From positions 124,001 through 188,000 of IMG/VR virus record IMGVR_UViG_3300027621_000003: DNA of 64,000 bases; one strand, given 5' to 3'. The notes under the pieces were generated by a model. It searched no databases, was not told where the DNA came from, and saw only the letters and a program-made list of their open reading frames with translations. This document shows, piece after piece, positions 3,636-22,888 of this stretch (positions are counted from its first letter, which is position 1; each line of letters begins with the position of its first letter). The position numbers were made by a program, and so were the translations under genes.

Positions 3636-4021
3636 GGGGATGACACAGATTCGATTGGCGTAGTTAGTCAATGGGTGCATGTATGAGCTGAAATAACTCA
3701 TTAAAAACTGGTTCAAAAAATTAAACGGAAACGTTTTAGACAAAATGGCGACTATCGGATTAATCCGTGAAAACGCTTCTGTAGTAGCCTAATCGCTATT
3801 ACAAAACAGGTCGGGAGACATACAACCTAGGAACAGAAGTCTTTTAAAGGTGTAGTTTCTATCTTAAAAGAAACAAGTGGAGGATTAGTTCTCAGTAAAC
3901 CAAACCACTATAAAATAAGGGAATTGTGAATTTCGGAACATTAGAAAATGTTGACCTAAACATGTAGTACCTCTTGGGTAAGACGAGCAAGACCGGGGGG
4001 CAGTACCTCGCATCTCCACCA
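3636..4021 (+). ncRNA. ssrA: tmRNA
   Basis: 5' GGGGATG pairs with 3' CATCTCC-ACCA, giving the G3:U70 Ala identity. Tag frame follows TAAAC at 3727..3792 (GNVLDKMATIGLIRENASVVA*). T-loop GGCAGTA; terminator follows. Confidence 0.9.
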
Positions 4022-8516: not shown

Positions 8517-8586
8517 TGGACACTGTGGGAATCGAACCCATACGTTCTGATTGCAAATCAAACGGTCTGCCGTTGACATCAGGCCC
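8517..8586 (-). tRNA. tRNA-Ala (UGC), atypical
   Basis: TTTGA-TTTGCAA-TCAGA with G3:U70; irregular acceptor and D arms. Confidence 0.65.
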
Positions 8587-13032: not shown

Positions 13033-13470
13033 TTATTTTAAGAATCTTAATTTGTATAATGTTGAGTAAATCAATTCTTGAACTCCATCAATTTGATTTT
13101 GAATATAAGATTCTTTAACCGATGTCCTATTTTTTTCAATATTTTCATCTAATTCTTTAAAATAAGCTATTACTTGTTCTGTTGATTTGTAATCAACTGT
13201 TTTAATTGTTTTATAACCAGTAATTATTTCGTATTTTCCTTGATAACTTTCAACAATATTATCAACTAACCCATCAATTCCATCATAATATTCTTGTAAA
13301 GCTTTATGTTCAGAAAATGATGATTGTGATTTTGTCTGCCAATGAAAGATATGTACTTGAGACTGTGAATGTAATAATGTTGCAATCATATCAACCACAT
13401 CGGCAGTTTCAGTTGCAGGATTTGATTTTGATGATAAACCATTTAAAAGGTCTCTTTTTGTAATTTCCAT
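13033..13470 (-). CDS. ferritin/Dps-like four-helix protein
   Basis: HIFHW...EHKALQEYYD...VD..VE pattern. Confidence 0.6.
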   Translation of the reverse strand: MEITKRDLLNGLSSKSNPATETADVVDMIATLLHSQSQVHIFHWQTKSQSSFSEHKALQEYYDGIDGLVDNIVESYQGKYEIITGYKTIKTVDYKSTEQVIAYFKELDENIEKNRTSVKESYIQNQIDGVQELIYSTLYKLRFLK

Positions 13471-13491
13471 ATCAATAAATATACTGATGTG

Positions 13492-14175
13492 TTAATATGT
13501 CTTAAACTTCATTTCTTTGATAACACAATTTCCAATTTTTTTATGTCCTGATGGTGCCATATGACAAAGTCCATCCCAACAATCCGATTTTGTAATCACA
13601 CGAGTATTAATCACTTTTCCACCAACAATTTTTTTTATCAATTCATTCTGAAATTTGGAATACTTAACTCTGTAGTTTGGATTTTCTGGTGTGTTGATGC
13701 AAATTAATGGGTCAAATCCGGTAATTACAACTGGTTTAACACCTTTGGAATTACAAATGTTTACAATTTTTTGAATGTTCTTTACTGCGCTTTCAATGGT
13801 GATTTTGCTGTTATACATATCATTGGCACCTCCATAGATAAAACAATAATCTAAACCATTGTGAATAGATTCTTTTGCTCTTTCTAACATCCAACCTGTG
13901 GTTTTTCCACCAACAGATATGTTATTCATTCTCATTTTTGTTTTGTTGGATAGAGTATATTGCCAACCATTAGGATTTGATGTGTGAGAATCACCAATAA
14001 AAAGAACGTATTTTCCTTTTACATCCACAATTGTGTCTTGTGGTTTAATTTTTACCGTATCAATTTTAACGGTATCTTCAATTTGTTTATTGTTACCCCA
14101 AACTTTCCAACTTGTTATGAATCCTAAAATTGCTATAACAATGACCAAAATAATTGCTTTTACTAAATTTTTCAT
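13492..14175 (-). CDS. SGNH/GDSL hydrolase, membrane-anchored
   Basis: IGDSHT, GG.TT, YGGAND and DGLCH blocks. Confidence 0.85.
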   Translation of the reverse strand: MKNLVKAIILVIVIAILGFITSWKVWGNNKQIEDTVKIDTVKIKPQDTIVDVKGKYVLFIGDSHTSNPNGWQYTLSNKTKMRMNNISVGGKTTGWMLERAKESIHNGLDYCFIYGGANDMYNSKITIESAVKNIQKIVNICNSKGVKPVVITGFDPLICINTPENPNYRVKYSKFQNELIKKIVGGKVINTRVITKSDCWDGLCHMAPSGHKKIGNCVIKEMKFKTY

Positions 14176-14281
14176 ATTTTTTATTAAAAAACACTCTCAA
14201 GCTCTCTACTCCCAGTTCCGAGGAATTGTATCTTACTTAGCCCGTCTCACCACTGTGTGGGTACTTGAGTTTATGTTTTTG

Positions 14282-14359
14282 TAGTCAGGACAGGATTCGA
14301 ACCTGTAACACCGGTTTGACCACTTACGTGGTTGCGTCTATCCATTCCGCCACCTGACT
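14282..14359 (-). ncRNA. tRNA-like RNA (Leu-type body, no canonical anticodon loop)
   Basis: AGTCAGG/CCTGACT acceptor, GGCGGAATGG..AGACGC D arm, TTCGAAT T loop; anticodon arm ACCAC-GTAA-GTGGT. Confidence 0.7.
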
Positions 14360-14436
14360 ATAGTTGTCAGTCTCTCCTGACCGTCACCCCCACTCCGAAG
14401 GTATGAGCCTTCATATGTGATGCTGGGTTAGCTTTG

Positions 14437-14510
14437 TGGTGTGAACGGGAATCGAACCACGTGGCACGTAGGGTTTCAATCTACTGCTCTACCTGCTGAG
14501 CTACCACACC
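14437..14510 (-). tRNA. tRNA-Phe (GAA), second copy
   Basis: GTAGA-TTGAAAC-CCTAC; slightly irregular T stem. Confidence 0.75.
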
Positions 14511-14537
14511 ATTATTGTTATACAAAGTTAAAATATA

Positions 14538-15014
14538 TTATCCAATTTTCCAAGCTCCAATTATGTGTTTTTTTATTTTTTTACCGTCCTCAGGGTTACC
14601 AATAACAACACCATCTTTAATGGTAAATGCGTGACCTTTAACAACCACCATGTAAGAACCAACAGGATATTTTTTAATGAACGAAAATGTTGTTGTTGCT
14701 CTTAATTTTTTAACACCTTTAACTACAACATAATACAACATGGTATTGTGTTCCTCAGAAATAATTTGAACGTCTTTACCGTTAATTTGTTTACCATTCT
14801 TTGATAACAAATTCATGCCAGTACCAAGTAAAAAAGTACCTTTACCATTTTTTCTCTTGAAAGTTTCTTTAACAAATTGGTGGGCGGAATCATAGTCCAT
14901 ATCCGCGGCTGATGCAATTGCCCTAACAACACAATCGTTTTTTTCAGATTTGGCAATTTTTGATTCAGTATATCCTTTGATTGCGTTTGAAGATGATATA
15001 AACCCCTTTTCCAT
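14538..15014 (-). CDS. hypothetical phage protein (NDCVVRA...GHAF motif, possible Cys/His dyad)
   Basis: Start moved to MEKG after TATATTTG promoter. Confidence 0.55.
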   Translation of the reverse strand: MEKGFISSSNAIKGYTESKIAKSEKNDCVVRAIASAADMDYDSAHQFVKETFKRKNGKGTFLLGTGMNLLSKNGKQINGKDVQIISEEHNTMLYYVVVKGVKKLRATTTFSFIKKYPVGSYMVVVKGHAFTIKDGVVIGNPEDGKKIKKHIIGAWKIG

Positions 15015-15060
15015 ACTACAAATATACAACAGGTATTTGACATTACAAAAAAATATTTTG

Positions 15061-15133
15061 CTCCCCGGATAGGATTTGAACCTATGACCTATCGCTTAAC
15101 AGGCGAGTGCTCTAACCACTGAGCTACCGAGGA
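15061..15133 (-). tRNA. tRNA-Asn (GUU)
   Basis: TCGC-CTGTTAA-GCGA. Confidence 0.9.
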
Positions 15134-15139
15134 ATGTTG

Positions 15140-15221
15140 TACCAAAGGTGGGAGTCGAACCCACACGTCTTTAAGACATTAGTTTCTAAGACTAATGCGG
15201 CTACCGTTACGCCACTTTGGT
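15140..15221 (-). tRNA. tRNA-Leu (UAG)
   Basis: TTAGT-CTTAGAA-ACTAA, long variable arm. Confidence 0.9.
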
Positions 15222-15227
15222 ATTTTG

Positions 15228-15298
15228 CGCAAGTGGAAGGACTCGAACCCTCGCCAAAAGTTTTGGAGACCTTTATGCTACCATTACACCACACTTAC
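15228..15298 (-). tRNA. tRNA-Trp (CCA)
   Basis: AAGGT-CTCCAAA-ACTTT, G73. Confidence 0.9.
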
Positions 15299-15305
15299 GT
15301 ATTTG

Positions 15306-15380
15306 TGATTCCTGAGGGACTCGAACCCCCACATCTTCTCGTCCGTAGCGAGATGTTTTATCCAATTAAACTAAGGAACC
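15306..15380 (-). tRNA. tRNA-Arg (ACG)
   Basis: TCTCG-CTACGGA-CGAGA. Confidence 0.9.
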
Positions 15381-15383
15381 ATT

Positions 15384-15458
15384 TGGGGTGACTGATGGGA
15401 TTCGAACCCACGACACTCGGCACCACAAGCCGATGCTCTACCACTGAACTACAGTCAC
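15384..15458 (-). tRNA. tRNA-His (GUG)
   Basis: TCGGC-TTGTGGT-GCCGA, C73, CCA; G-1 not encoded. Confidence 0.9.
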
Positions 15459-15460
15459 AG

Positions 15461-15534
15461 AGTCCATAGTTGGAATCGAACCAACGAATAACAGTTTTGC
15501 AGACTGTCCCTTTGAACCGCTCAGGCATATGGAC
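15461..15534 (-). tRNA. tRNA-Cys (GCA)
   Basis: ACAGT-CTGCAAA-ACTGT, U73. Confidence 0.9.
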
Positions 15535-15542
15535 TTATATTC

Positions 15543-15589
15543 TATAATCCTCCAAATCTAGTAAAAAAAGTGAGTTTTGGAGGATTATA
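15543..15589. repeat. 14-bp inverted repeat hairpin in tRNA spacer
   Basis: tataatcctccaaa ... tttggaggattata. Confidence 0.7.
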
Positions 15590-15596
15590 AGTTTTG

Positions 15597-15678
15597 TGCC
15601 AGCAGTAGGACTCGAACCTACGAACTCAAATGAGAGCGGGTTTACAATCCGCCGCAATTGCCGCTATGCGATACTGGC
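15597..15678 (-). tRNA. tRNA-Tyr (GUA)
   Basis: GCGGA-TTGTAAA-CCCGC, long variable arm. Confidence 0.9.
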
Positions 15679-15685
15679 ATTTTTG

Positions 15686-15758
15686 TCTTTCCTGTTGGAT
15701 TTGAACCAACGACATCTTGGATGTAAGCCAAGTGCTCTTCCAACTGAGCTAAGGAAAG
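15686..15758 (-). tRNA. tRNA-Val (UAC)
   Basis: CTTGG-CTTACAT-CCAAG. Confidence 0.9.
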
Positions 15759-15764
15759 ATATTG

Positions 15765-15838
15765 TGACCCCATCGGGACTCGAACCCGAAACCCCCGTGT
15801 TAAAAGCACGGTGCTCTAGCCAATTGAGCTATAAGGTC
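15765..15838 (-). tRNA. tRNA-Lys (UUU)
   Basis: CCGTG-CTTTTAA-CACGG. Confidence 0.9.
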
Positions 15839-15844
15839 ATATTG

Positions 15845-15915
15845 TTACCCCTGAAGGATTCGAACCTCCACTAAGTGGACCAAAACCACTCGTCCTGCCG
15901 TTAGACGAAAGGGTA
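15845..15915 (-). tRNA. tRNA-Gln (UUG)
   Basis: AGTGG-TTTTGGT-CCACT. Confidence 0.9.
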
Positions 15916-15920
15916 ATTTA

Positions 15921-15997
15921 TGGTTGGTGATACAGGACTTGAACCTGTGACCCCTACGGTATCAGCGTAGTGCTCTAACCAACTGAGCTAATCACCA
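15921..15997 (-). tRNA. tRNA-Ile (GAU)
   Basis: CTACG-CTGATAC-CGTAG, CCA. Confidence 0.9.
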
Positions 15998-16006
15998 ATG
16001 TATTTG

Positions 16007-16079
16007 TGGGGTAGACAGGTATCGAACCTGTTCCTTCGGATTTTCAGTCCGGCGCAATGACCTCATCTGCCACTACCCC
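16007..16079 (-). tRNA. tRNA-Phe (GAA)
   Basis: CGGA-CTGAAAA-TCCG. Confidence 0.85.
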
Positions 16080-16087
16080 ATTTTTGG

Positions 16088-16108
16088 TTACCAATACGTC
16101 AAAGAACT
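16088..16108 (-). promoter_or_regulatory. boxA-like antitermination element
   Basis: Identical 21-mer to 9151..9171. Confidence 0.7.
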
Positions 16109-16109
16109 T

Positions 16110-16146
16110 AAAAACAAAAAAACCCGAACCTTGTGAGTTCGGGTTT
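16110..16146 (-). terminator. attenuator terminator of tRNA operon 2
   Basis: AAACCCGAAC-TCACAAG-GTTCGGGTTTTTTTGTTTTT. Confidence 0.8.
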
Positions 16147-16167
16147 CCTTTTTTAGGCTACTACGTG

Positions 16168-16263
16168 TTAACTTATAACACCCGAACTTGAAAATACGCG
16201 AAGATACCAATTCTGACAGAATTGAATGACATGTTTCACGATTTGTTTATTTACGAGTTTCAT
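16168..16263 (-). CDS. leader peptide of tRNA operon 2 (31 aa, MKLVNKQIVKHVIQFCQNWYLRVFSSSGVIS)
   Basis: Hand-translated; downstream of TATCTTTG promoter; 3' end carries AGTTCGGGT, complementary to the terminator 5' arm. Confidence 0.8.
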   Translation of the reverse strand: MKLVNKQIVKHVIQFCQNWYLRVFSSSGVIS

Positions 16264-16312
16264 TGTGTTTAGTATTAAATATGGTACAAAGATACAAAAG
16301 TTTCTTGATATG

Positions 16313-16573
16313 TTAAATATTTTTTTCGTTTTTATTTTTTAATAACCAGTTGGCTCCGACTACAAACCCTTGTTTCCATTTTGTAATATCATCATCACAC
16401 ATCCCTTCACTGTATTGTTGATATTTGTCATCAGCGCCAATATGAATCATTTGTTGGATTCTTTTTTCTATAAAACCGGGCTTAGTTTCAAACTCAGGTT
16501 CTCCCAATTCAACCATACCATTTTTCCACTTTTTCCAAGTGTCAAAATCTTTTAAATCTTCAATGTTAATCAT
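16313..16573 (-). CDS. hypothetical protein
   Basis: 86-aa ORF. Confidence 0.5.
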   Translation of the reverse strand: MINIEDLKDFDTWKKWKNGMVELGEPEFETKPGFIEKRIQQMIHIGADDKYQQYSEGMCDDDITKWKQGFVVGANWLLKNKNEKNI

Positions 16574-17005: not shown

Positions 17006-17569
17006 TTATAATAAATATTCCAATACTTTTTCTTTTATGCCCGTTTGTTTAATGCCTTCTTTATTTTCGGGTGTTAATACAAAGTTCTTCAATCCCCAAG
17101 TCTTATCGTGCACATCCGTTAATGACATATTCAAATCATCAATTGCCACCCAATGTGTGATTACAGGATTCTGACCAATATATTGCGCAATCTCCAAACT
17201 ACGAGTTTGTTCTAACTCCGATTTGTTGTGCCATGGGAAATCATCATAATCATCATATAAGATAGAATCGGTAAAGGCAATTGGTTTTTTAATAATACCT
17301 TTTGATTCGTAATATTCTCCCATCTCCTCAACTGTCGCCCAATTTTTCCAATCTGAAGATACAACAATTTCGGCACCTGTTTCCTCTAAGATTTCATTAA
17401 GAACTTTAACCGCCTCCTCATCAAAATTATCAAAACGATACTCAACGGGCATACTTAAAGTACTCATAGACAATTTACGTTTACCCCAACTTTTTTGTTT
17501 TTTGAAACGATTACCCCAATTATCAGACAGACATATCACACCATCGTGGTCCAAAAATATAACTTTCAT
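17006..17569 (-). CDS. HAD-superfamily phosphatase (Swiss-army-knife RNA-repair type)
   Basis: MKVIFLDHDGV, IVVSSDW and WVAIDD motifs. Confidence 0.8.
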   Translation of the reverse strand: MKVIFLDHDGVICLSDNWGNRFKKQKSWGKRKLSMSTLSMPVEYRFDNFDEEAVKVLNEILEETGAEIVVSSDWKNWATVEEMGEYYESKGIIKKPIAFTDSILYDDYDDFPWHNKSELEQTRSLEIAQYIGQNPVITHWVAIDDLNMSLTDVHDKTWGLKNFVLTPENKEGIKQTGIKEKVLEYLL

Positions 17570-17677: not shown

Positions 17678-18394
17678 ATGTCATATTTAAATACACCAAT
17701 TCCCGTAGTAGAGGCTTACATTAGAGGAAACTTCTTAAGAAACCAAGAAGATTCTCACGATAAAAAATTCCCTTGTTACATTTTTGGAATGTCGTCAATT
17801 CCAGCACAAGCACCATTATTTCACTTTATCATGGAGGATGGGGCATTATGGTGGAGAATGCCAATACAGGCATTTTGTTGGAAAGAAGATGCACCTGAAC
17901 AAGAACTTGATGAATTAGTGTTATGGGATTCATTTTCATATCATGTTGGAGCAACAGCATTCCCTATGTTAAAAAACAAGACATGTAAATTCATATCAAG
18001 ACGTAGAGTAGAATATACGGGCAAATATTTATTTACCTTAGATTGGGGGTCATCTTCAGACATGGGAGACACAGATTTTGGATTAAGTGAATTCCCATCA
18101 CAACACAAATGTGGTCATTTCATTGCCATGGATAATGGAAACTTTGCAATACAACCAAACAATAGGTTTGTGCTTCATGACCCATCGTTCACAGTAAAAG
18201 ATGAATTGGTTATACATAGAAAATACAATACCACATTATGGACTGCTGAAAGAAATGGAAGATGGGTCACACCTGATACTGACATTATGAATTACGACCA
18301 TACCGATTTAGAAAAAGGTGAGAGTAATAAAAAACGGTCAGATGAATATAATAAAATTGATTCCGAACGTTTAAAGAATGAAGGTTCAATTTAA
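17678..18394 (+). CDS. hypothetical phage protein
   Basis: 238 aa; HKCGH..MDNGNFAIQPNNR motif. Confidence 0.65.
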   Translation: MSYLNTPIPVVEAYIRGNFLRNQEDSHDKKFPCYIFGMSSIPAQAPLFHFIMEDGALWWRMPIQAFCWKEDAPEQELDELVLWDSFSYHVGATAFPMLKNKTCKFISRRRVEYTGKYLFTLDWGSSSDMGDTDFGLSEFPSQHKCGHFIAMDNGNFAIQPNNRFVLHDPSFTVKDELVIHRKYNTTLWTAERNGRWVTPDTDIMNYDHTDLEKGESNKKRSDEYNKIDSERLKNEGSI

Positions 18395-19007
18395 CCACCA
18401 AAATGGATTCTTTTTAGACGGGAGAATATTTTGTGAAGTTTACGGTATTGCGGAAAACGAATCAAATGATGAGTTATTAAATTCAGGATGGTTACCGTCA
18501 ATGGAGGAAAAAAATATTTGGTATCAATCAAGAAGTCATAGAATAGAACTATCTAATTTTGAGATATCAAAAAAACGAAGACACATAATTAAAAAGTTAA
18601 CCTGTGAAGTAAGTGATTATATTCAAAACCAAGAAATAGATGATTTCTTTCAAGAATACTACAATGATAAGGATTTTGATATTATGGATGATTATAATAA
18701 CTGTTCAAAGTTTTTTGAACCAAAAATATTGTACTTAAGATTAGAAGGTAAATTAGTTGCGGTGGGAAGATACTTAGAAAATAAAAAGTCTAATGTATTT
18801 TTAAATCTTGCTTATGATAACAATAATTTAAAGTTATCTCTTGGTACTAATTTATTTTACATACTCGCAGATATTACCAAGAAACAAAATAAAGATTATT
18901 TGTATATCTATGAATCATATGATGATAGTTTTTCATATAAACAAAAATTACCTAACTTAAATTTTTGGAGTGGGACTAAATGGATATCAAATGCTATTTA
19001 TAAATAA
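18378..19007 (+). CDS. aminoacyl-tRNA-protein transferase-like (Bpt/ATE family, GNAT fold)
   Basis: LNSGW, WYQSRSHRI, LVAVG, Y...KLSLGT, YLYIY and YKQ patterns. Confidence 0.55.
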   Translation: MKVQFNHQNGFFLDGRIFCEVYGIAENESNDELLNSGWLPSMEEKNIWYQSRSHRIELSNFEISKKRRHIIKKLTCEVSDYIQNQEIDDFFQEYYNDKDFDIMDDYNNCSKFFEPKILYLRLEGKLVAVGRYLENKKSNVFLNLAYDNNNLKLSLGTNLFYILADITKKQNKDYLYIYESYDDSFSYKQKLPNLNFWSGTKWISNAIYK

Positions 19008-21508: not shown

Positions 21509-21519
21509 AACGTGTTTAG

Positions 21520-21550
21520 AAGGGTCCTGAGAAATCAGGACTTTTTTTTT
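21520..21550 (+). terminator. intrinsic terminator (possible attenuator)
   Basis: agggtcctga-gaaa-tcaggacttttttttt. Confidence 0.75.
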
Positions 21551-21586
21551 ACACATAAATTTCGTAAATTTGTAAAACATATTGTA

Positions 21587-22078
21587 ATGGATAAAGTATT
21601 AGTATTAAACTCAGACTACACACCCTTGAACGTAACTTCGGTTCGTAAGGGATTTGTATTGGTAATAAAAGGAAAGGCTGAGGTATTAAAACAAGACTCA
21701 CAAAAATTGTCATCATCAGTTAAAGAATATGTTAAACCATTAATAATTCGTTTATTGTCTTATGTTAGATTTAAAACACGAAGTGTACGGTTAAACAGAA
21801 AACGTATCTACAAAAGGGATAACAACCAATGTGTTTATTGTGGAAGTGAAAAGAATTTAACAATTGACCATATTATACCTCGTTCACGTGGTGGAAAAAA
21901 CAGTTGGGTTAATTTGGTAACTTGTTGCTCATATTGTAATTTAAAAAAGGCAAATAAAACACCTGAAGAAGCTAACATGAAAATGAGATACAAAGCGTAT
22001 GAACCAACTGTATTCTCATCTATTATTAGTTCTGACGTTGAGTGTTTATGGAATGATTATAAAGAATCATTTGTCTAA
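21587..22078 (+). CDS. HNH endonuclease (McrA-like)
   Basis: VLVLNSDYTPL...RD...CVYCG..LTIDHIIPRSRGG..W.NLV.CC..CN..K. Confidence 0.9.
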   Translation: MDKVLVLNSDYTPLNVTSVRKGFVLVIKGKAEVLKQDSQKLSSSVKEYVKPLIIRLLSYVRFKTRSVRLNRKRIYKRDNNQCVYCGSEKNLTIDHIIPRSRGGKNSWVNLVTCCSYCNLKKANKTPEEANMKMRYKAYEPTVFSSIISSDVECLWNDYKESFV

Positions 22079-22210: not shown

Positions 22211-22888
22211 ATGGATTACGGAAACGATTTCAAAAACTACTTTACCAAACACTTAGGTAAAAGTTCACTCAATCTTCATCATTATGATAGACAGATTGAA
22301 AATTCAATGACTCCTTACATTTTGGAGGAAAGGGAAATGAGGGTAACTCAAATGGATATTTTTTCTCGTTTAATGAGAGAAAGACTATTATGGGTTGCTG
22401 GACCTGTAAATGACAACATGTCAACCATTGTACAAGCTCAGTTAATGTACTTGGACTCGGTTGAGAGTACTGACATCACAATGCACATTGATAGTCCTGG
22501 TGGGTCAGTAAAATCAGGTTTGTCTATGGTTGATGTTATGGATTACATTCGTTGTGATATTCGTACAGTAAACACAGGTATGGCAGCATCAATGGGTTCA
22601 GTTCTGTTAGGCGCTGGTACAAAAGGTAAACGTTCTTCATTACGTTTTTCTCGTACAATGTTACACCAATCATCAGGTGGTTATGAAGGTAACATTCAAG
22701 ACGCAGAAATTTCAATGAAAGAATGGAAAAAAATTAACGATGTTCTTTTTGATTTGTTGGGTGGGTATTGCGGTAAAACAACAAAACAAGTTATGAAGGA
22801 CGCATCTCGTGATTTATGGTTAGATGCTAAAGAAGCGTTAGAGTACGGAATTATTGATGAAATTGTTGTTAAAAAAGAAAAAAAATAA
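22211..22888 (+). CDS. clpP: ATP-dependent Clp protease proteolytic subunit
   Basis: DIFSRL, IDSPGGSV, GMAASMG, MLHQ and YGIIDEI motifs. Confidence 0.95.
   Translation: MDYGNDFKNYFTKHLGKSSLNLHHYDRQIENSMTPYILEEREMRVTQMDIFSRLMRERLLWVAGPVNDNMSTIVQAQLMYLDSVESTDITMHIDSPGGSVKSGLSMVDVMDYIRCDIRTVNTGMAASMGSVLLGAGTKGKRSSLRFSRTMLHQSSGGYEGNIQDAEISMKEWKKINDVLFDLLGGYCGKTTKQVMKDASRDLWLDAKEALEYGIIDEIVVKKEKK

Follow-up and report, generated by a model that had tools for sequence, protein, structure and literature searches.

The tRNA genes of phages are usually read as a codon supply or as spare parts against host defenses. The tRNA frame can also serve an RNA that is attached to it: in engineered tRNA scaffolds, in the tRNA-miRNA RNAs of murine gammaherpesvirus 68 (MHV68), and in mascRNA, it lends RNase P/Z processing and stability. 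Transfer-messenger RNA (tmRNA) has no anticodon, yet it is aminoacylated, and RNase P processes it (PMC3985003); a truncated E. coli tRNALeu without the anticodon and variable arms is still charged, according to a review (PMC9976931, citing Larkin 2002). Here we describe a tRNA-like gene, referred to below as the mimic, in a 64,000-nucleotide stretch of phage DNA (the window) that corresponds to positions 124001 to 188000 of the 294,914-bp IMG/VR phage record IMGVR_UViG_3300027621_000003, rated 98% complete. On balance, we favor the view that the mimic is a functional, non-decoding tRNA-like gene, processed by the host and probably leucylatable, and that it is the minimal-center member of a widespread phage family derived from a Bacteroidota-type tRNA-Leu.

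The gene and its parts are as follows.

14282..14359, minus strand: the 78-nt non-decoding, Leu-type tRNA-like RNA (RNA 5′ end at 14359, 3′ end at 14282)
14353..14359, minus strand: 5′ strand of the acceptor, AGUCAGG, which pairs with 14283..14289 and is invariant in the family
14334..14350, minus strand: Leu-type D arm, GCGG-AAUGGAUAG-ACGC, with A14, A15, and G18G19, followed by a single A
14319..14332, minus strand: hairpin ACCAC-GUAA-GUGGU in place of the anticodon arm, from sequence and fold (loop at 14324..14327)
14307..14318, minus strand: 12-nt variable-region remnant, CAAACCGGUGUU, whose last base is the U48 equivalent
14290..14306, minus strand: T arm, ACAGG-UUCGAAU-CCUGU, near-invariant in the family
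14282..14289, minus strand: 3′ strand of the acceptor, CCUGACU, plus the discriminator A73; a C and an A-rich stretch follow, and CCA is not encoded

All seven pairs of the AGUCAGG/CCUGACU acceptor are Watson-Crick, and the dinucleotide UG links the acceptor to the D arm. A preliminary description had recognized a mimic with a perfect acceptor, a Leu-type D arm, a T arm, and A73 but no anticodon loop, and all of this was confirmed, with the minus strand added. The Rfam tRNA model (RF00005) scored the gene at 41.2 bits, above the gathering cutoff of 29 (E = 2.7e-5 over the 64-kb window), and its alignment gave the anticodon loop 4 nt instead of 7, treating the loop bases as a deletion. ARAGORN called the gene “tRNA-??? 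(ta),” i.e., with a forced 2-base “anticodon.” In RNAfold, the cloverleaf was both the minimum free energy structure and the centroid structure. Where a canonical tRNA-Leu has a 7-nt loop with U33 and an NAG or NAA anticodon on a 5-bp stem, the mimic has the 4-nt GUAA loop. It does have A73 and a Leu-type D arm, as well as the Levitt pair A15-U48 and the canonical T loop. At the place of the long (type II) variable arm lies the 12-nt remnant, which forms at best a 3-bp AAC/GUU stem that is unconserved in relatives. The remnant contains the self-complementary hexamer ACCGGU (14309..14314, minus strand), and a related locus (L049) has CCGG at the same place; judging by its sequence, the hexamer could make dimer contacts.

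The family was sampled by searching IMG/VR for the exact 22-mer that spans the T arm and the 3′ acceptor strand. Matches were found in more than 120 contigs among the matches listed, and 190 instances (186 distinct sequences) were extracted, 54 to 259 nt long with a median of 104 nt. The phages that carry the family are 33 to 295 kb in size, with GC contents of 32 to 52%, and they often hold several copies each. Across the 186 members, the first 16 and the last 25 bases are near-invariant, and the base after the discriminator is C in 98%. CCA is encoded in just 5 of the 190 copies, and a retro-copy origin was rejected on this ground. By comparison, among 232 ordinary tRNAs of the same 120 loci, the 3′ 22-mer was common to at most two contigs each. 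Five complete carrier phages have no protein family in common (blastp, 1e-4). The mimic carries everything that defines the family, namely, AGUCAGG/CCUGACU with A73, the Leu-type D arm, the ACAGG-UUCGARU-CCUGU T arm, and a center that is not an anticodon arm. Outside IMG/VR, the 22-mer occurred among 185,579 species genomes in 21 contigs of metagenome-assembled genomes (MAGs) of mixed taxonomy, about half of them Bacteroidota. These contigs look like phage DNA with the same kind of element, and the sequences indicate that the 22-mer is not a host tRNA sequence. One of the 21 matches is a CRISPR spacer in a Bacteroidetes bacterium UBA6183 MAG (L157:51-725), where an array of 47-nt repeats and 30-nt spacers (period 77) includes one spacer identical to the acceptor strand and T arm of the family, so that the invariant part has been targeted by at least one host. 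This spacer ties the family to Bacteroidota hosts, and it would match many unrelated phages at once. For cultured phages, a megablast of the mimic region gave no match, and when the 78-mer was compared with 50,697 cultured phage records by distant blastn, the only matches were generic T-arm ones, so no cultured phage in that set carries the family. Neither Rfam 15 nor the literature searched yielded a description of the family, which is absence of evidence within those limits; the phage family with the AGUCAGG frame is apparently undescribed. To our knowledge, no bacterial-virus family of such tRNA-frame RNAs has been reported.

Since the family sample was taken with the 22-mer, a second scan was added that was anchored on the D arm only and was blind to the acceptor. 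It returned 119 phage genes. Canonical tRNA-Leu made up 84 of them, carrying 48 acceptor stems other than AGUCAGG. The AGUCAGG frame was present in 14, of which 10 had no Leu anticodon arm and 4 had one by lenient calls that fail to pair on inspection. The remaining 21 also had no anticodon arm, with other acceptors (AAUCAAA, AGUCCUG, and others). The AGUCAGG acceptor is thus enriched in the anticodon-less genes (10 plus 4 dubious compared to 21 plus 84; Fisher P = 2e-4). About 31 to 35 of the 119 phage genes with a Leu-type D arm, or about a quarter, are anticodon-less. This means that anticodon-less Leu-type genes are common in phages and that AGUCAGG is the dominant subfamily. A covariance model (R1) made from an alignment of 30 short members scores the family at ∼45 to 78 bits and true tRNAs at no more than ∼40. 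On the window genome, the mimic was the top score at 77.8 bits and the single match in the family range, compared to 37.8 bits or less for every true tRNA. The copy number by R1 is 1 to 4 in complete phages, at least 12 in one record (G015), and at least 8 in another (G019).

The frame is under constraint at the RNA level. In the alignment of 30 short members, 97.8% of the cells pair, compared to ∼30 to 39% in slid controls. Double-sided changes were found at all three D-stem Watson-Crick pairs and at five pairs overall, and covariation as high as that observed was reached by 0 of 500 shuffles. The preliminary description had asked for covariation in homologs, and this check came out in its favor. 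The center that replaces the anticodon and variable arms, on the other hand, is hypervariable: it ranges from 16 to ∼200 nt and is almost always unrelated between copies. As many as 149 of 186 centers resemble no other, and the few small clusters show compensatory hairpin changes. Anticodon calls forced on the family by ARAGORN with introns allowed were scattered over all amino acids. Among the predicted center hairpins, GNRA caps account for 19 of 60 tetraloops (GAAA 11, GUAA 8), which is ∼10-fold above chance. This enrichment, together with the compensatory hairpin changes, means that the centers are folded RNA and not junk. The GNRA tetraloop to which the preliminary description drew attention is present in the mimic as GUAA, but it does not define the family. 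A lake variant of the mimic gene (run X19) has a GUUA loop, and the “mini” relatives have loops of 3 to 7 nt of any sequence; from these sequences, the GNRA cap is not obligatory. A CUUAAGU-type loop was seen in only a few members. At gathering score, Rfam found tRNA, tmRNA, and one group I intron on 16 family loci, and no center was matched. The centers were also considered as introns, a reading that was rejected because the inserts are too short for group I and the intron-allowed anticodon calls are scattered. A tmRNA-like tagging role was likewise rejected; no consistent open reading frame (ORF) is present, and a 34-codon frame in one insert (L005) was unseen in a distant relative (G004) and lies within chance.

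Comparison of close and distant copies shows how the center changes while the frame is kept. Identical copies of the mimic occur in three other IMG/VR records (four records in all), and DNA of this mini allele was found in at least 14 freshwater runs dated 2017 to 2024. A good example of center replacement is locus L005, where the adjacent GDSL-lipase-like gene product is 95% identical to that of the window and the flanks, acceptor, and D arm are almost unchanged; there, ∼107 unrelated nt replace the window's 27 nt between the D and T arms, and the T stem is preserved by two compensatory changes (Rfam tRNA score, 30.5 bits). A third allele at the mimic locus was found in a metatranscriptome run (X16). 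Two homologs were found in G004, a distant phage with a complete genome of 180 kb and a corresponding gene product of only 56% identity. The “mini” has CCAC-AGCAA-GUGG (a 4-bp stem with a 5-nt loop) and compensatory changes in the D stem (GUGG/ACAC) and in one acceptor pair. The “maxi” shares the AGUCAGG acceptor and has a ∼75-nt center and a hairpin inserted into its D loop. The equivalent hairpin of L049 is GCCCC-GUUGA-GGGGU. Homologs with a normal anticodon loop, which would have pointed to a local deletion, were for the most part not what was found: the nearest has the 107-nt insert, the distant ones have small loops, and few have CUUAAGU. The earlier argument that the gene is maintained and not decaying holds up as well, as the frame is present in more than 120 contigs among the matches listed, the D stem covaries, and minis occur in distant phages.

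Two related loci showed further tRNA-like arrangements. L005 has an extra ∼140-nt tRNA-like insert that is absent from the window (L005:3522-3660, plus strand), in which an acceptor stem of 8 bp (UAAUUAGA) is accompanied by a T arm and by a 7-bp hairpin that resembles a long variable arm; it was recognized by neither ARAGORN nor Rfam. In a complete 33-kb phage (G052), a canonical tRNA-Ile(UAU) is built on an AGUCAGG acceptor and an ACAGG/CCUGU T stem (L165:5880-5952), and it adjoins a family member with a CUUAAGU (Leu UAA-like) loop on an over-long stem. The sequences of this pair suggest that the acceptor/T half moves between tRNA bodies.

The conserved parts are those of a leucine tRNA. When compared to the tRNA classes of the same phage loci, the family D-arm consensus matched tRNA-Leu best, with a mean local score of 11.1 compared to 8.3 or less for the other classes, and so the Leu-type assignment in the preliminary description was borne out. 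Single-base conservation is 92% for A73, 89% for A15, 96% for U8, and 92% for the D-loop GG; A14 is also conserved, and the T loop is invariant. The U48 equivalent is U in 157 of 186 members (84%), whereas the preceding bases vary at random. In a review (PMC9976931), the elements listed for leucine identity in E. coli are the same set as that conserved in the family. By sequence, then, the family keeps what leucyl-tRNA synthetase (LeuRS) needs and discards only what LeuRS ignores. A pure processing handle could be built on any tRNA, and it is mainly because the LeuRS set is kept that we take charging to matter. Leucylation, which the preliminary description had proposed, is thus plausible in view of this conserved set and of the charging of truncated tRNALeu, and charging of the mimic itself is a prediction. 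The likeness to host tRNA is uneven. The tRNA-Leu(CAA) of a Chitinophagia MAG (Bacteroidota) differs from the frame consensus by one D-arm and two T-arm bases, whereas its acceptor stem is different, the host tRNA-Leu acceptor being GCCCAGA, unlike the AGUCAGG of the family. The T stem of the mimic has a predicted ΔΔG for elongation factor Tu (EF-Tu) of only ∼+0.4 kcal/mol relative to the yeast tRNAPhe reference, and the idea that the mimic avoids EF-Tu was dropped for this reason.

The mimic is present in RNA libraries, although this does not prove that a mature species exists. The gene is covered by contigs from four metatranscriptomic libraries, the bin that contains it was deeper than the adjacent coding bins in every run, and same-frame contigs with other centers were also found in RNA libraries, one at a depth of 113; these data are contigs, for which DNA carry-over is possible and k-mers are shared among family members. 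Contigs of 84 to 85 nt were considered as the mature species and rejected, because they end at 14361 owing to a strain single-nucleotide polymorphism at 14362. Similarly, an “AACCA” joint in run X19 was not accepted as added CCA, as it may instead be a tandem copy in a relative.

The source of the window (∼32% GC) is a 295-kb freshwater jumbo phage, and all 28 tRNA genes that ARAGORN found in its genome, as well as its tmRNA, lie within the window. The phage has two intact tRNA-Leu genes. Other features that bear on the mimic are as follows.

14360..14436, minus strand: element U, a GC-rich structured spacer that separates tRNA-Phe from the mimic, conserved in L005
14182..14281, minus strand: element D, a ∼100-nt structured RNA directly 3′ of the mimic
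18378..19007, plus strand: aminoacyl-tRNA transferase of the ATE1/Bpt/FemX fold, 209 amino acids, with ∼40 metagenomic homologs but no Pfam annotation
22211..22888, plus strand: phage ClpP, near the transferase ORF
3636..4021, plus strand: phage-encoded tmRNA, 63.7 bits

The flanks of the mimic are like those of the phage's 27 true tRNAs, with an A/U-rich leader ending in U on the 5′ side and N73-C followed by an A-rich stretch on the 3′ side, and the family members as a whole have the same leader and 3′ context. Element U ends in GGGUGAC, a 5-bp hairpin with a GAGAGA loop, and the leader AACUAU; a similar UGAC-hairpin(GAAAGA)-AACAU leader with covarying stems stands before ∼12 of 190 family members. 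Element D contains a long outer stem and two inner helices, and its loops (GGGCUAAGUNAGAUACAAUUCC and GGGAGUAGAAUGC) are highly conserved. Its eight homologs all adjoin tRNAs or tRNA-likes, and compensatory changes were found at 14 of 22 predicted pairs; the element also occurs at L019:2231-2334, L033:8646-8749, L035, L089, L048, L133, and L024. A search of the locus at E ≤ 10 matched neither U nor D to an Rfam family. An HDV (hepatitis delta virus)-like or other known ribozyme was considered for D and rejected, as there was no Rfam match and no convincing fit by hand; from its sequence, D could be a new ribozyme or a protein-binding RNA. Some phages have multikilobase RNA islands of such genes, for instance, an ORF-free island of ∼3.8 kb with about nine members, true tRNAs, and structured spacers (L034). 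In a sigma-70 promoter and terminator scan of 13400..16400, promoters did not rise above shuffles. No CCA-adding enzyme, class Ia synthetase, leucyl/phenylalanyl (L/F)-transferase, or Ro (TROVE) protein was found in the 295-kb genome. Processing, CCA addition, and any charging would therefore be left to the host.

Three other features of the window were observed. An HNH endonuclease gene (21512..22078, plus strand) lies immediately upstream of tRNA-Leu(UAA). A weak tRNA-like match (8517..8586, minus strand; Rfam score, 29.5 bits) with an imperfect acceptor stem was missed by ARAGORN; it is placed between tRNA-Pro and tRNA-Asp, and a tRNA-Ala gene is absent from the phage. Beside the tRNA array, a gene with a HAD_SAK_2 domain, the HAD domain of “Swiss Army Knife” RNA-repair proteins (17006..17569, minus strand; E = 2.9e-20), hints by its sequence at tRNA repair in this phage.

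A mechanism that accommodates these data would run as follows. The mimic would be transcribed with the neighboring tRNA genes, as gene order and shared flanks suggest. Host RNase P would cut after U(−1); at the 3′ end, trimming would stop behind the encoded C74, and the host enzyme would add the rest of CCA. The frame holds the full bacterial LeuRS set along with the needs of RNase P, 3′ trimming, and the CCA-adding enzyme. The RNA would fold into the tRNA L-shape, which the covariation supports, and its sequence shows that it cannot read a codon. Host LeuRS would probably leucylate it, given the identity elements and the biochemistry of minimal tRNALeu. As a best guess, the frame would serve as a tRNA “handle” from which a swappable center gains processing, stability, and an end that is charged with Leu or binds LeuRS; the window copy would then act through the frame alone. 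A broader version of this idea is speculative, and we offer it only as a tentative and somewhat doubtful proposal: freshwater Bacteroidota phages, and perhaps phages of other hosts, would have a modular RNA system in which the leucine-chargeable frame is a universal handle, the fast-exchanged center is the specificity or effector domain in phage-host conflict, and the aminoacyl end is used outside translation, with the window copy being a bare handle.

Several points weigh against a functional, leucylatable mimic. Its fold z-score against shuffles is weak (−1.24). Retrieval with the 22-mer makes the conservation of that part partly a matter of construction; independently found relatives (G001 and G004) differ by one or two compensated pairs. 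LeuRS, RNase P, and EF-Tu are not known to read the base pairs of the acceptor and T stems and do not account for the near-invariance of these stems, which could reflect a DNA-level or recombination role instead. The depth of the RNA-library contigs is comparable with that of neighboring genes. The transcription ends, CCA addition, and charging are predictions. If the center is the effector, the near-empty copy in the window may be a spent or null allele. Finally, no conserved protein partner was found near the element or in common among the five complete carrier phages; within the 120 loci, no ORF cluster occurred in more than 15 (DUF932, terminase, T5orf172, and phosphoesterase).

Among the alternatives, the mimic may be a punctuation signal, a tRNA-like structure kept so that host RNase P and 3′-end enzymes free element U, element D, and tRNA-Phe, as mitochondrial tRNAs do, with the RNA itself having no further function. 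The mimic does sit between two conserved structured RNAs, one of which (D) covaries extensively and always adjoins tRNAs or tRNA-likes; the ORF-free island of L034 fits as well, and the conserved parts are only those that the processing enzymes need. However, these enzymes read shape and not sequence, and so they explain neither why the sequence is conserved to the letter nor why only a Leu-type body with the LeuRS set is used. In addition, 71 of the 120 loci have no true tRNA nearby, the U-type leader precedes few members, and D adjoins few. For these reasons, we regard punctuation as unlikely. A decoy or sponge is a little harder still to credit. It would act on a host factor that attacks or senses the acceptor/elbow half (3′-end toxins or a tRNA-sensing defense), and the center would be irrelevant or would serve evasion. 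The arrays of at least 12 and at least 8 copies, the hyper-allelic locus, which resembles conflict genes, the likeness of the D and T arms to host Bacteroidota tRNA-Leu, and the RNA-repair-type HAD domain gene nearby are consistent with this. Most complete phages have only one to four copies, however, and no target is known. Moreover, the most conserved part, the acceptor, is unlike the host GCCCAGA and the 22-mer is not a host tRNA sequence, which speaks against close sequence mimicry, and anticodon nucleases would not be decoyed by an RNA without an anticodon loop.

The preliminary description had also proposed the mimic as a non-ribosomal leucine donor for the transferase ORF at 18378..19007, to which an N-degron route with the phage ClpP might be added, and this appears improbable. 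The ORF has only a weak Pfam match (ATE_C), and the best matches of its AlphaFold model (pLDDT 85.7) are human and yeast ATE1 (E = 1e-7; TM, 0.6 to 0.69), with FemX and MprF next. The name “Bpt-like aminoacyl-tRNA transferase” is thus justified, and this part of the proposal stands. From the model, the enzyme might add N-degrons, or it might modify DNA with charged tRNA like phage Mom. The nearby ClpP, the retained LeuRS identity set, and the precedent of a Staphylococcus tRNAGly set aside for cell-wall synthesis (PMC3239215) favor a donor role. The functional link was not supported: a profile of transferase homologs gave no matches in 50 of 50 other phage records with the RNA family, 9 of them at least 90% complete, and no homolog was present in any retrieved family locus. 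A private partnership in the window phage would be compatible with the sequences, but it cannot explain the family. The acceptor also has none of the E. coli L/F-transferase preferences (G3:C70, A4:U69, C68, and C72; PMC4105747), although the enzyme is a different one, and the predicted T-stem ΔΔG is not that of an obvious ribosome avoider. Even less probable, in our view, is an element that works at the level of DNA, in which the invariant 5′ and 3′ parts are homology arms or recombination sites that shuffle cassettes and the tRNA shape is ancestral. The identical ∼25-nt ends in phages of 32 to 52% GC without shared proteins, the swapping of centers between near-identical phages, the gain and loss of tRNA-like modules at the C|AAA junction, and the tRNA-Ile(UAU) of G052 on the same acceptor and T arm would all follow from it. 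The D-stem covariation, A15/U48, G18G19, and the GNRA-capped center hairpins are RNA-level constraints, however; no recombinase or endonuclease is consistently linked to the element, and with CCA not encoded, there are no retro-copies. Decay of a tRNA-Leu gene into a pseudogene minus 3 nt of the anticodon loop, which was already disfavored, is very improbable indeed. In favor of decay are the short anticodon arm (14 nt, where 17 would be normal), the weak z-score, and the presence of two intact tRNA-Leu genes in the phage. Against it, every stem is perfect, the same copy is found in four records and in runs from 2017 to 2024, small-loop homologs with compensatory changes occur in distant phages, the frame is conserved far beyond ordinary tRNAs, and no close relative was found with an intact 7-nt Leu anticodon loop at the locus.

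A non-decoding tRNA-like gene thus remains the reading that we prefer. One subfamily kept letter for letter across phages without shared proteins points to a second, non-decoding use of the tRNA-Leu body, one that seems to take advantage of the indifference of LeuRS to the anticodon. The R1 model lets annotators tell the family RNAs from true tRNAs and from “pseudo-tRNAs.” If the centers prove to be effectors, they would constitute a new class of phage regulatory or counter-defense RNA and a natural template for RNA scaffold engineering, and the modular handle, if true, would be the natural counterpart of engineered tRNA scaffolds.

The known systems each resemble the mimic in part. The bacterial Y RNA YrlA has an acceptor-like stem that runs into the Ro-binding helix, and it is not known to be aminoacylated. 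By contrast, the flanks of the mimic are non-complementary, and its ends look like free tRNA ends; identity with a Y RNA was rejected on this basis, together with the absence of a TROVE/Ro gene from the 295-kb genome. What the two share is a non-decoding, tRNA-shaped module, which in YrlA lies within a non-coding RNA (PMC4201824). The tRNA scaffolds, the MHV68 RNAs, and mascRNA are eukaryotic or artificial, whereas the mimic family is found in bacterial viruses. The non-proteinogenic tRNAGly of Staphylococcus (PMC3239215) is similar in that a tRNA species is set aside from translation as an amino-acid carrier. It has a normal anticodon arm and avoids EF-Tu through weak T-stem pairs, whereas the mimic has no anticodon loop and its T stem is predicted not to be unusually weak. 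As in tmRNA, the ends form an acceptor and a T arm, and the anticodon arm is replaced by other RNA. However, tmRNA needs SmpB, has G3-U70 as its Ala identity and only a reduced D arm, and contains pseudoknots and a reading frame for the tag, whereas the family has U3-A70, a full Leu-type D arm, centers down to 16 nt, and no consistent ORF; the mimic itself has U3-A70 and a center of 27 nt, and the true tmRNA of the phage is elsewhere in the window. The minimal tRNALeu constructs have a similar structure: the acceptor, D, and T arms, A73, and the D/T-loop core are kept, the anticodon and long variable arms are dispensable, and LeuRS still leucylates and edits such RNAs, according to the review (PMC9976931). 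Unlike these laboratory constructs, the mimic belongs to a natural, conserved phage family with an invariant non-host acceptor and a variable insert, and its charging is predicted from sequence.

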